Of a DNA stretch of 64,000 nucleotides, positions 25,064 to 30,735 are shown one piece after another. This DNA comes from Trichosphaerium sp. ATCC 40318. Lineage: Eukaryota > Protista > Tubulinea. Location of the stretch: the NCBI GenBank assembly GCA_038496445.1, contig JALMLS010000420.1, positions 372,001 through 436,000 on the forward strand, written 5' to 3'. Below the pieces are notes generated by a model. It did no database searches. It was given only the letters and a program-made list of their open reading frames with translations, and had not been told where the DNA came from. Within the stretch, counting starts at the first letter, position 1; each line of letters begins with the position of its first letter. The translations under genes were made by a program, and so were the position numbers.

Positions 25064-26320
25064 ATGCTAAGTGTACGCACCCTTTCTTGTATTATTTTGG
25101 TATGCAGTATAGCCTCCACAATGGGTTATGCCCATATGAAGAGTAATGCGGCTGATCCGTACAGTGGTCCTACTTGGGAACAACAATCTGCTGATTCGAA
25201 AATGAGCACACTTTGGAAGGACTTGACGGCTGATACTACTCCTCTACCATGGTTTTCTACCGTTCTAATGGCTGAACTATTCATCGAGTCTATGAACGTT
25301 ACATTCGATACAGTCGCTGAAGATCTACCAAAACAAGGTACCGTTTAGTAGTTTACGCAAGGCATTTTTGTTTATCTCGTCAATAACGTTTCATTATCAC
25401 GTGACTAACCTTTTACTAAAAGGTCTTTTACATACGGACAGGCATAAATTGATTCACACCGTTGGTGGTATTAGTCAGTGTGTATGGGAACCTGTTGGTA
25501 GCCATAACTACACTGGTATTTTCCAAAGTGGAGCTGATAACGTTTTATGCCGCTTGTCTACCGCCGCGAAACCTGTACCAGGAAATTACCCGCCAGGTCT
25601 TAGCGTAAAAATATTGATCGATGGTAAACCATCTGTTAACGTAATGGCAATGTACGTCAACATAATAATCATTACAAAGCTATTTTGTTTCACTACTGGA
25701 CACGTATCTTCAAGTTTAAACTCGCTTTGTTTTGCTTTCGCGTACCACTTTGTCTGATATTTGTTTATTTCAGGTACTCTTTGACTGGCCAAGATAGCTA
25801 CAACTTCTTTAAGCACGATCTTACCAACCACGTACCAACACTTGGTACAGCTGCTACACTAGCTGAAAAAGCTCTACTCCAAAAATTCGAAACAGCTTCA
25901 GCTTGGCCTAACATGCTTGGAGTCAGCACGTGGTCTCAACATGATCAAAAAGGAAACGCTGTCGCTAAACCAAACTTCCCTTACCGTCTTATCTTCCATC
26001 CTGCATTAGGAGTACACAATAAGTACCCAGACAGTGACCCAGGCATTGATTTGCCAACACAGCTAGAGACGCTTCAAAAAGGAAAAATCTACGATGTCTA
26101 CGCTCAAGGTGCCCCATTTGCTACGCCAGAGATGATTGCTACACTCTCTGTTACTTCTGAGATGACTGGATCGAACTTTGGAGATAAAAAGCTATTTTAT
26201 CAGCATGTCCGAATGGAAAACGATTTCGTTTTTCATCCAGAATGGATAAGTAGTGCATTCCAAATTACTAGATCACAACAATCTGTACCAAAATATGTGT
26301 ACCCTGATTTACCATGGTAA
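25064..26320 (+). CDS. Secreted catalase-superfamily (catalase-like heme) protein (3 exons)
   Basis: Signal peptide, then RHKLIHTVG (distal-His-like), CRLS, PGLSVKILIDGKPSVN, NFFKHDLTNH, FGDKKLFYQH. Confidence 0.7.
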
Positions 26321-26624
26321 ATGTTGTTTGTGTGTTGCGTTAGAGTCACATACACATTACTTGGTTTGAAGTTCGACCCAACGCTCACAAAGTCAATAAA
26401 TATTACCTTCCCATTTTTTCCAGTTTATCCTCAAAGAGTTAGCGTCAACAACACGTGGTGCGAGAAGACATAAAAGATAAGTCACCTAATGCGTTACACC
26501 AAGCACATGCAACATTTGTGCCTTATATTTGTGATAAACTAAGGCTGGTTTAATGATTACTTCTCAAAAACAGCAAACCTAGAACTTACAGCCTCAACTT
26601 TTTTTGTTAATTTTTAGATGTTTA

Positions 26625-29600
26625 TTATTCTACTTCAACAAAAAGTACTGCGTTTGGTACAAGACCTGAGAGGATTTAGTTGGTTTAAAGAAAAATAAAG
26701 AGAAATAAAATGGTAATGTACCTAGATCTTTAAGATTTTGAGATGACTCATCTGGACCAAACAATCTCTTTGGGTAATTTGATACAAGAGAAAATTTTTC
26801 ATATTTTGTTTCATATGCATCAACAAAGTCCATGACAGATGCAAGCGTATCAGTGTGGTAAAATAGTCTTTGTATACGATTCCCATTACTTAATCGTATA
26901 GCTATCTTTGTAACTGCACCCTATAAAATACGTTACCAACGGAGGACCTTGAAAAAGTAAATTACATTTTCTTTTTTAGCTTCATCAGGTAAACTTTGTT
27001 TTTTCTTCTCCTTTGCTTCCAGAACAGCCTACATAATAATGAGATATTAAAAAACAAAATAAGCGTATTAATACATCATCTAAGACTTTGGTTTTAGCTT
27101 TTTTTGCGTCTGCGGTTGAGCTGTCTTCATTCTCTTCTTTTTTCCTTGAAGTGAAAATTAGTACAATGTGAAAGTGTAATTCTTACTCTTTGGTATCATC
27201 TGATGAATTTTCGTCTTCCATATCAAGAGGTGGAGCAAAATCGACTTTGACATCTACATCTGTAATACGAACAGCACGAGCAGGTACACATTCTAAGACA
27301 TCAAACTTGATTATTTGCCCTGCAAATTCAGCATCAAAAACATCTCCAACAGTCAATGCAACAAATTTCGGTAGAATGCTCTCAAGCCATGCTACAACAG
27401 GTCAGAAGCTAGATATCTTTATAATATAGCACCTTTTGGATCCGGCACTTTAAGGAACTGTTTAGAGTGCGGTTGTAGCTTCAAGAATTCGGCACGAGGT
27501 AAGTTGACTTTTCGTACTTGTACCTTTTTGAATTTAATGGCTAAGCTGTTGGTAAATCTTATGTACGTACTATATCTCCTGGGTTTATAACAAGGCGCTC
27601 CATTAACCAAAGGGGTATACCAACTTCTCCATCTGGTGCTGTAAACTGCGTGACACCACAAAATGTCCTTTTTGTCTTTAAAGTCGAAAGTTCAAAAATC
27701 TTATAGTGTTAGAAGAAAGCAGTACTATATCTTATGTACCATCGGTCCTGACGCATCTTTGTCAACACCTGTAGCTCCGTATCCCCCTTTAGTAGAGCTC
27801 GAACTACCGATTGATGGAGCTCCAAAACGGTGGTGCATTGGTAGCGTCTTCATCTTTCCAGCTAAAGCTTCTATTGCTTTTGTAGGCAGTATAATCTTTC
27901 CTGCTTTATCAGCATCTTTCCCACCAATTGATATGGCCGGTACAGCTTTATACCTCTCCCAAAAAGAACTGACTGTTGCAATTTGGTCATGGCCAGTAGC
28001 ATTCATATCCACACGAATACCTCGCTGTAACGTCTATTAGCTTGTAATAAAAGGGGAACAGTTTTTTTTAGGATGTTATTTTTTTAAATTACTAGTGTAA
28101 GTGTACCTTTGATATTGATGCTCGAATATCACTCAGTAGATCTTTCATAGTCGTTGTTGGTTCCCAGATAGATATTTGTGACTTTTCAATTTCCATTGAT
28201 ACTGAGAGTGGCCGATTTTCTTCTAAAGGTACAGAGGACGATGTGGAAAGTGCGGGTACACCCATGTCAAATGCGTTTGTATTTGATACCTTGCATACAG
28301 GCTGAACTATTCTAAACTGAGGTGGGGCGTCAGGAAAGTCCCTCGAGATACGTTAGGAACCACCAATTAAAAAAATAAGAGCACCTTGGGAATTTGGCCT
28401 ACAAGAAAAGTTAACATGATACTTTTTTTTCTTTTTTTTTTGTTTGTTTAGTGTACCTCAAAAACAATTGCAGTCTTCTCCCATGACGCTCCTTTTTTAT
28501 CTGAAAAAAATGTTTCTGTAGCTGTAAATCCATTCTTGTTATAATATGTTGCTAGATCTATGCCCAAAGTCGATAAAGTGTCAAAACCAAAAAGAGCAAT
28601 CGCCCACTTGTAAAAAAAAGAAGTAAGAAAGATAGAAATACAGCTTCCTCTAAATACTTTGCCAATAGCTTAAATATATCTACGTACATGGTATATATCG
28701 CCTTCTATTGGGCATACGTAAAATCCAAGCTTATCTGTGTCTGCGTCATCAAATGATTTGATCTCTTTTAACAGCCTTTCGAACGCCTGAACAAAAAAGT
28801 ACTGTTAGCACAAGTTGTATCTGTAGTTCTCATTGTACTGCTTCTCTACCAATCTTTGGAGTGTAATGGGCGTGTTTATCTTCACTGTTTGTCTCTGGCC
28901 GGCCTCTAAAAGGTAAATTAGCAAAATCAAGCTAACAGGCACAAAATCAGAGAAATGGTATTAAGACGAACCTAGATTTAGGTATATACTTAGCAAGTTC
29001 ATCTGGAGGAGATCCACCTCCAAGAATCTCGTCTTTTACTAATAACATAGCATTAAAAGTTCCTTCTAACTCTACAAGATAATGGTTAGAACGCAATAAA
29101 AGAATACAGGAACAACATTGGTTTTTCTTATCAATGTTGCTTGTACCTCGTTTATTTTTGACTCGCCACATCCATTCTTCAATTTCGTATGGCTTGAATC
29201 CATCACGTTTAAGAAAAGCTTCTAAGGGAGAAAGCGTGTTACAGGGTCGAAGAAACAAGCTGTTATTTTATAAGTTTAAAGCGCACCTATTGCGGGTGCA
29301 ACTGTTTCTGTCCATTCCGTTTGAGATGGGTTTACCTAAGAGATATATAAGTATTAACAAGATAACGTTGTCATACCCAAGTTTCATCAACAGCTAGATC
29401 GCCTTTGTCTCCTTGTCCGGCTGGGGGTGTATAACAAGTCACCTGGTGGATGTGAGTTGGATTTCAGTTTACAATACGCGTCATGCTATACAACATACAG
29501 GCTCAACAGGTGGTTTGGGAATCTCAGGAGGTGGCATGGGTGGGTTTTTACTCTTGTTGGAGTGATAGCGAAAGCATATCAAATTGAATACTTCTGACAC

Positions 29601-30482
29601 TGTTGCTGGGTTTCCTAGTAACCTACGTTCCTGTATGACACTATTTGTGTCTGTTATATGATCTTGAAGTGACACGTCTTTGGATTGAAGCATCTAGAAT
29701 TCAAGTAAACTTCGAAACAAACAAGACAAGTCAAGCGAGACATTTTTGAGAGTTTTTTTTAGCTTTTTCTGTTTACCACTGGTGTTGTCCATGTCTCATC
29801 AAAGATCATTTGAAATTCTCTTACAGGGTATCTGTCTAAGGAACAGTATACTGTAAAATTCTGAATGAAAGATTTTGGTTAAATTGAGAAACGTTTCAAA
29901 TAAAAGAAAAAGCATGTCAAATGTACTTCTTCGTTTAGCTCTTTGAAGACTACTTTCGCGTAGGCATTGTCTCCAATCCACTTATAAATATCTGAGCGAA
30001 GCGCTGTAAGCAGAGGATTGTCTATTCATAGTTAGGAGTAGTTATAGCTCCGTCGTGCCTGTGGTTATCGAGGCTGTATTTGACGGCGTAGGGAGCGAAT
30101 ATGACGGTATTGAGGGCTCTTTTGACTATTTACAAAGTAAGTTGAATTACAGTTATCTGACGTGCCGTAAATAGCGCAGAATATGCGTTTGACAATACTT
30201 TGAGAAGGTCTGCCGTTTGACATTGTTGTGTTTGTAAATGTCTATTAACGCGTGTAATCCATTCACTCAAGCCTTGAGAATCCGAACATACAAACTACAG
30301 CTTATAAATAAGCAAACAGTAATAAATTGTACCATAGGTTGCCAACTTTGATCGCATAGCACTTGAAACGGCTTATCCTCTACAGTGAGCAATACTGTAT
30401 AACTTGTACTATCCACTGTGATTAAATCGTACTGCTTGTTTTCGGAACACCAAGCATTGAATGCTTCGTGTACTTTTTCCAT
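26625..30482 (-). CDS. Multidomain ubiquitin/p97 adaptor: 2 RWD-like repeats + UBE2Q-like pseudo-E2 + UFD1 + UBX
   Basis: Phase-consistent exon chain. E2-like: RLLKEIK...FPRDFPDAPPQFRIVQP. UFD1: AGKIILPTKAIEAL, FCGVTQFTAPDG, LPRAEFLKLQPH, ITDVDVKVDFAPPLD. UBX: IAIRLSNGNRIQRLF...LVSNYPKR...LKDLGLVPNAVLFVE*. Confidence 0.8.
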
Positions 30483-30735
30483 CCTCTAATCCCGTTTTAC
30501 GCTAGCACAAGACCAATGCTTCAAATCGGTCTCAAAAAGTAAGCATTCATTGAACAGGAGCTCCTGTTGCACTGTATCACGTAGGATTTTGTGGTTTTTG
30601 ACGACTGTGTTGTAGTTTTGTTTCTTTAGAGTGCAACAGATGATGTCCATTACGCCAACTGTATTTATATTCATTACATACGTAAGTACAAGCTGCGTGA
30701 TTTCTCGTTTATTTTTTTCTTTTTCTTTTTGATGG

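Follow-up and report, generated by a model that had tools for sequence, protein, structure and literature searches.

The 64,000-nucleotide stretch of DNA analysed here (the window) comes from contig JALMLS010000420.1 of Trichosphaerium sp. ATCC 40318 (GCA_038496445.1, positions 372,001 to 436,000), and its region 26500-30700 holds a minus-strand eukaryotic gene with many very short introns and a reading frame that is continuous across the exon chain. The gene runs from an ATG at 30482 to the end of the stop codon at 26625, and its 22 exons (867 codons) join two RWD-like domains, an E2-like domain, the ubiquitin-binding domain of UFD1 and a terminal UBX domain on one chain (Table 1). In this report, we describe the gene and its relatives, and we present its product as a candidate adaptor of the ATPase p97/Cdc48.

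The exon chain was built by hand and corrected by homology; a splice model that follows the longest open reading frames (ORFs) is wrong, as it reads through introns. All 21 introns have GT-AG borders and are 38-140 nt long (median 56), and the GC content is 0.40 in the exons and 0.32 in the introns. The initial annotation of this DNA had proposed one phase-consistent exon chain at 26625-30482, and the rebuilt model has exactly those limits. Three splice details were placed provisionally and leave the chain unbroken, namely the 140-nt intron at 30161-30022, the exact ends of the linker exon 28905-28839 and which of the acceptors 28033 and 28024 is used. The two acceptors lie 9 nt apart at 28024-28036 (aatag/ACGTTACAG/CGAGG), and the frame is kept by either of them; the shorter product, ISKRGIRVDM, agrees slightly better with the family alignment. 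The frame of the linker exon was picked by homology (GREAAFERL versus GTKEATERI), on which ground the other frame, requiring a non-GT donor at 28838, was rejected. A microexon of 14 nt (28398-28385), encoding AKFPR plus one base and flanked by introns of 58 and 43 nt, has its support in homology and not in RNA, through the comparison of EAKFPRDFPDAPPQFRIV in the fusion protein with EMKFPPNYPETAPQFRLV in the homologue P0006.

Table 1. Features of the fusion gene (positions are those of the window)
Feature	Exons	Positions	Strand	Basis or remark
Whole coding region	22 exons, 867 codons	26625..30482	-	21 GT-AG introns; one BLAST segment to P0006
RWD-like domain 1	30482-30333, 30294-30162	30162..30482	-	Repeat of domain 2; aligns with both N-terminal domains of P0006
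RWD-like domain 2	30021-29927, 29860-29777, first part of 29693-29499	29538..30021	-	Homologue model P0006:143-262
Pro-rich linker and conserved helical region (YEIEEW motif)		28839..29537	-	Conserved in P0006, P0007, P0008 and L002
E2-like (UBE2Q-like) core	28786-28688, 28606-28457, microexon 28398-28385, 28341-28107	28107..28786	-	Family profile and homologue model
Ser codon TCA at the catalytic-Cys position		28197..28199	-	Motif PLSVSMEIE and flanking alignment
Junction exon: end of E2-like domain (RGIRVDM) and start of UFD1_N1	28033-27740	27740..28033	-	Junction aligned in five proteins; Pfam UFD1_N1 on residues 26-72
Rest of UFD1 ubiquitin-binding domain (UT3 = N1 + N2)	27699-27571, 27523-27433, 27391-27187	27187..27699	-	Pfam and RNA-confirmed introns
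Charged linker	27144-27075, 27028-26966	26966..27144	-	No SHP motif, no ATG; RNA contig reaches 27102
UBX domain and stop codon	26920-26722, 26665-26625	26625..26920	-	Pfam UBX

Several lines of evidence converge on a single gene. The fusion protein and P0006 align by BLAST in one segment (model residues 100-752 versus 146-804, 693 columns, 30.6% identity, E 4e-85), which stretches from RWD-like domain 2 through UFD1 and is collinear in a MAFFT alignment, and a single collinear segment of this kind leaves very little room for a division into two genes. When the junction exon was searched exhaustively by HMMER against a library without this genome's own proteins, three real relatives were returned in which the last E2 helix, the GARVDM motif and the start of UFD1 are unbroken; the best match of that search, P0001, was a spurious bacterial repeat protein and was discarded. 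At the downstream end, the exons that follow the UFD1_N2 exon contain no ATG before the start of the UBX domain, the sole Met of the linker sits in the same RNA-confirmed exon as UFD1_N2, and retention of either of the last linker introns brings in a stop codon; thus, the UBX exons cannot stand alone. In addition, the one public RNA run that holds part of the stretch contains a 480-nt contig, mapping to 27102-27751, from which four introns have been spliced out (27700-27739, visible as a loose end; 27524-27570, equally readable as 27520-27566 owing to a 4-nt repeat; 27392-27432; and 27145-27186), with borders equal to those predicted across the UFD1 part. The RNA in the run is therefore spliced and the gene expressed, with a single transcript covering UFD1 N1, UFD1 N2 and the charged linker. 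Together, the continuous frame, the collinear match and the homologues that encode the same junction in one ORF agree with the initial annotation in treating the locus as a single gene, and we conclude that the fusion is one expressed gene encoding an 867-residue protein.

The N-terminal domain of ~100 residues is present in two copies in the fusion protein and in P0006, and in one copy in P0008. A model of the homologous domain P0006:143-262 (predicted local distance difference test, pLDDT, 87.5) consists of a helix, four strands and two helices (alpha-beta4-alpha2). With this model, Foldseek gave weak matches to E2 and RWD domains, and a structural search against every representative chain returned the RWD domains of Knl1, the SEA complex and listerin at Z 8.0-8.5, about the level that the tool calls common, with nearly every row an RWD or UBC-like fold over the whole domain. 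The next matches were FANCL, UFC1 and E2s, and then the RWD domains of RWDD1, RNF25 and GCN2. No Pfam RWD match was obtained on the N-terminal domains, and the homologue fold and the repeat alignment make the two RWD-like domains of the initial annotation a fair description. The RWD-plus-UBC layout of UBE2Q1 and UBE2Q2 is thereby mirrored in the fusion protein (PMC10971424). Between the RWD-like and E2-like domains lies a helical stretch (29147-29335) that carries YEIEEW, followed in the homologues by LGNEKAL and EILG, and that has no Pfam match.

For the E2-like domain, the fold was assessed on a family profile and on a homologue model, not on a model of the fusion protein itself. Single E2 and RWD exons had no match in Pfam, the E2 exon alone found nothing relevant in the Protein Data Bank (PDB), and when single exons were compared with the Atlas, the junction exon retrieved only noise and the E2 exon a weak lead towards UQ_con/UFC1. 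Matches of single homologue sequences were also weak (P0003 residues 1-150 with the Ubc6 UBC domain at 0.0016 and with UBE2Q1 at 0.005; P0005 residues 1-250 with UBE2Q2 at 0.0027). The family profile A3, which comprises eight sequences with two exons of the fusion gene among them, matched UBE2Q2 (1zuo, 1.3e-9) and UBE2Q1 (2qgx, 1.6e-9) in the PDB, followed by more than 100 other E2s. An AlphaFold model of the homologue P0007:128-322 (pLDDT 69, predicted template modelling score 0.66) has helix 1, four strands, a disordered insert and two helices, and its best Foldseek matches are 1zuo and 2qgx (E 1e-9 to 7e-7, target-normalised TM-score 0.64-0.77), with canonical E2s next. The UBE2Q-like E2 fold first suggested for this gene is thus recovered through its homologues, and a disordered insert of very variable length, with ~20 residues in the fusion protein and ~90 in P0005, lies directly before the active site, where a low-complexity insertion had been noted.

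The residue at the active-site position agrees with the initial annotation, which had read a Ser (codon near 28197) where UBE2Q enzymes have their catalytic Cys and had considered the Cys of QPVCK as a possible substitute. The active-site region reads PLSVSMEIE with a W 11 residues past the Ser, versus CMELL with a W 9 residues past the Cys in UBE2Q, a correspondence defined by the motif and by HMMER-aligned flanks on both sides and not by residue-level superposition. In the homologues, this column holds Ser in five of six and Ala in one (Protostelium), and never Cys; at the position of QPVCK, they read RPGL, RPGI or KPRF. In addition, and beyond the earlier reading, the two C-terminal helices of the E2 fold have been lost: UFD1_N1 starts ~23 residues past the long E2 helix, too close behind it to leave place for them, and the 169-residue chain of 2qgx is aligned no further than residue 150. 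In UBE2Q1, activity depends on the triad Tyr343, His409 and Trp414, of which His409 and Trp414 lie in this C-terminal part of the E2 (PMC10971424). The His409/Trp414 region is missing from the fusion protein, and the equivalent of Tyr343 is not kept (AFDMG versus GYG in two homologues). UEV domains are Cys-less E2 folds without the two C-terminal helices and are used for non-covalent binding. The domain described here resembles those of Tsg101 and Mms2/Uev1 in both losses; it differs in that only the fold is common, with no further sequence relationship. Taken from these alignments, the E2 domain is predicted to be dead, UEV-like and descended from the UBE2Q branch. It shares with UBE2Q1 and UBE2Q2 an RWD-type N-terminus ahead of a UBC core that has no HPN motif and finds in them its best sequence and fold matches (PMC10971424), whereas Ser in place of Cys351, the missing C-terminal helices and the long insert before the active-site position set it apart.

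The UFD1 and terminal UBX domains expected from the first reading were both recovered by Pfam on single exons. UFD1_N1 (E 3.6e-11, 42.9 bits, plus a weaker first half) and UFD1_N2 (E 2.4e-13, 50.3 bits) represent both UT3 subdomains of UFD1, with 31-42% identity to P0010-P0014 over 130-270 residues. In contrast to UFD1, however, the fusion protein has a low-complexity insert inside N1, carries the domain mid-chain in a large protein and is without the C-terminal UT6 region, which comprises the SHP motif FxGxGxxL and the NPL4-binding stretch. After UT3, only a 56-residue charged linker follows and then UBX, so that the usual p97- and NPL4-binding tail of UFD1 is replaced. The SHP motif (F.G.G) is absent throughout the 867-residue model, and of the other UFD1-domain proteins retrieved, five in number, P0010, P0011, P0012 and P0014 have one or two such motifs.

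The UBX domain scores 60.8 bits against a cut-off of 21 (E 1.5e-16), and the closest solved structure to its exon is the UBX domain of FAF1. The Arg of strand 1 is kept (IAIRLSNG versus LRIRTPSG of FAF1), and the loop between strands 3 and 4 reads NYPKR versus TFPRR of FAF1, a conservative change that keeps the aromatic-Pro-basic pattern; binding of p97 by a YPK loop is a prediction only. Among the 30 nearest named clusters in the Atlas, 28 have UBX alone and the other two have UBX with OTU1_UBXL or SEP. The proximity to the FAF1 domain, with the Arg and the loop pattern kept, argues strongly for a predicted role as a p97 adaptor.

A result that goes beyond the initial annotation is that the first ~730 residues belong to a pre-existing family of amoebal proteins, in which zinc fingers are the normal ending. 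This backbone of RWD-like domains, dead E2 and UFD1 is found in amoebae (Acanthamoeba, Protostelium), and the members P0003, P0005, P0006, P0007, P0008 and P0009 are collinear with the fusion protein over those residues at ~30% identity; the difference is that they end in zinc fingers of the XAF1/TRAFD1/TRAF type and none of them in UBX. The sister proteins at L001 (1-3400), L002 (whole) and L005 (240-2240) carry XAF1_N, TRAFD1/XAF1, TRAF and UBZ-like zinc fingers, often followed by C2H2 and MYND fingers. L001, the genomic locus of P0003, has a single ORF across the E2-UFD1 junction, and so does L005, with an intron-free ORF of 666 codons; a frameshift or assembly slip is apparent at L005 in the acidic insert of the E2-like domain, where the ORFs 7-354 and 240-2240 overlap. 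Full-length proteins of the family are available from transcripts as P0006 (1116 aa, Acanthamoeba-type), P0007 and P0008 (941 aa, complete ORF, Protostelium nocturnum). At 90% identity, P0006 clusters with a fragment from Acanthamoeba castellanii whose annotation is that of a MYND finger protein; in A. castellanii Neff, the sole annotated piece of the 1116-residue protein is the 205-residue 'MYND finger domain containing protein' XP_004332982.1, and the full protein occurs in transcript assemblies alone, so that public annotation of this family is fragmentary. Our literature searches found no paper on the amoebal family and none with the domain combination of the fusion protein, and the accessions of the assembly and of the RNA run likewise led to no paper. 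No second protein joining UFD1 to UBX was found by word search, exhaustive search, metagenome scan or the Atlas, all seeded from parts of the protein and not from an architecture query. As judged from these sequences, the UBX ending appears to be confined to this gene among the family members retrieved. At the Trichosphaerium locus itself, the genome is compact: a convergent neighbour gene (25685-26320, plus strand) ends ~300 nt from the stop codon of the fusion gene, and a minus-strand gene lies ~250 nt upstream of its ATG.

We consider it probable that the gene encodes a single 867-residue ubiquitin-recruiting adaptor of p97, in which the zinc fingers of the amoebal backbone have been replaced by UBX and the NPL4-binding region has been lost. 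The gene model directly shows the architecture, a UBX signature and two losses, one of the Cys and one of the SHP-bearing UFD1 tail; the most likely function would be that of a ubiquitin-binding p97 adaptor without NPL4 binding of its own. Our data suggest a model whereby UBX would dock the protein on the N-domain of p97/Cdc48, the UT3 domain would hold ubiquitin or ubiquitin chains, as the UEV-like dead E2 probably would too, and the RWD-like domains would bind a partner or client. Since the NPL4-binding region is absent, the protein would most likely act as an accessory or alternative adaptor with a ubiquitin-recruiting or enhancing role, like FAF1 and UBXN7, and not as a replacement for UFD1-NPL4. 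In mammals, UBX adaptors with ubiquitin-binding parts enhance p97-UFD1-NPL4 (PMC9377798, PMC12630741). Like FAF1, FAF2 and UBXN7, the fusion protein combines a predicted ubiquitin-binding part with a C-terminal UBX in a single chain and has a charged helical stretch ahead of UBX; it differs from them in that this part consists of UT3 and a dead E2 instead of UBA, UAS and, apparently, UBH. As for its origin, UBX has probably taken the place of the zinc fingers in an amoebal backbone that ended in fingers of the XAF1/TRAFD1 type. Human XAF1 is reported to be a VCP adaptor in a review (PMC13579142, citing PMC10720657), and this makes the exchange of zinc fingers for UBX suggestive, as the swapped modules may share a partner; we take it as a lead only.

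Other explanations were weighed at the level of the gene and of the enzyme fold. The locus could hold two adjacent genes, an RWD plus E2-like gene ending in ISKVHLH at a stop at 28094-28092 and a UFD1-UBX gene starting at the ATG 28009 (MNATG); both signals are present in the sequence, and the junction is uncrossed by any RNA read. However, the gap from stop to ATG is only 82 nt, and the putative intron at the junction has the local GTAC donor and 76% A+T. Moreover, the ATG 28009 is the sole in-frame ATG of the junction exon, and conserved residues, RGIRVD among them, lie upstream of it and align with five homologues, while the E2-like domain and UFD1 share one uninterrupted ORF in P0003 (genomic), L005, P0006 and P0008. 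We therefore regard a division into two genes as highly improbable and retain the single fusion gene. Engineered Cys-to-Ser mutants of E2s can form stable ubiquitin oxyesters, and the E2-like domain might accordingly be thought still catalytic, with ubiquitin carried on the Ser in this way or on another Cys. Retention of the Ser in five of the six homologues and the atypical character of the UBE2Q enzymes, which are without the HPN motif (PMC10971424), would fit this idea. Nevertheless, Ala occupies the site in Protostelium, the Cys of QPVCK is not conserved, the equivalent of Tyr343 is lost, the part with His409 and Trp414, essential in UBE2Q1, is absent (PMC10971424), and a disordered insert of very variable length stands just before the site; there is hardly any likelihood of catalysis, and the domain is better read as a non-catalytic, putative binding module.

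A more serious alternative is that the protein is a ubiquitin reader independent of p97, its UBX being a mere ubiquitin-like fold that binds something else, as in the UBX domains that do not bind p97. The YPK loop in place of FPR is compatible with this, and the sister proteins, with zinc fingers and MYND but no UBX, indicate that the core job of the family need not involve p97. On the other side stand the strand-1 Arg and the aromatic-Pro-basic loop, the nearest solved structure being a UBX domain that binds p97, the UT3 domain, which is otherwise known only in a p97 cofactor, and, as a lead only, the statement on XAF1 in the review (PMC13579142, citing PMC10720657); on balance we hold p97 independence to be unlikely. 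Several points nonetheless weigh against a p97 adaptor as we have drawn it. The departure of the UBX loop from FPR is one of them, and the UBX ending was found in no other organism by these searches. In the single public run with coverage, no RNA read crosses the E2-to-UFD1 junction or reaches the UBX exons. The structural models are those of homologues at ~30% identity and not of the fusion protein, and the homologue model of the E2-like domain has a pLDDT of only 69, with the Ser site in a weakly predicted stretch. The binding of ubiquitin, p97 and a partner is likewise predicted from sequence.

The adaptor reading may be carried one step further, and here we are more tentative and would rather doubt than assert: the backbone of RWD-like domains, dead E2 and UT3 could constitute an unrecognised class of ubiquitin-chain reader, which in this gene would be plugged into p97/Cdc48 through UBX and would recruit ubiquitylated clients without NPL4 binding. 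To our knowledge, the ubiquitin-binding domain of UFD1 is known almost only within the UFD1-NPL4 pair. A UT3 domain that has lost the tail binding NPL4 and p97, is fused to a dead UBE2Q-type E2 and is linked again to p97 through UBX would provide a natural test of which parts of UFD1 do what, and also of the way in which a ubiquitin reader tethered by UBX acts on p97, which is at present being addressed with FAF1, FAF2 and UBXN7. The analysis also brings to light an amoebal family described in none of the papers found, and, if the proposal is true, the exchange of XAF1-type zinc fingers for UBX would mark the zinc fingers of the sister proteins as a p97-linked module too.

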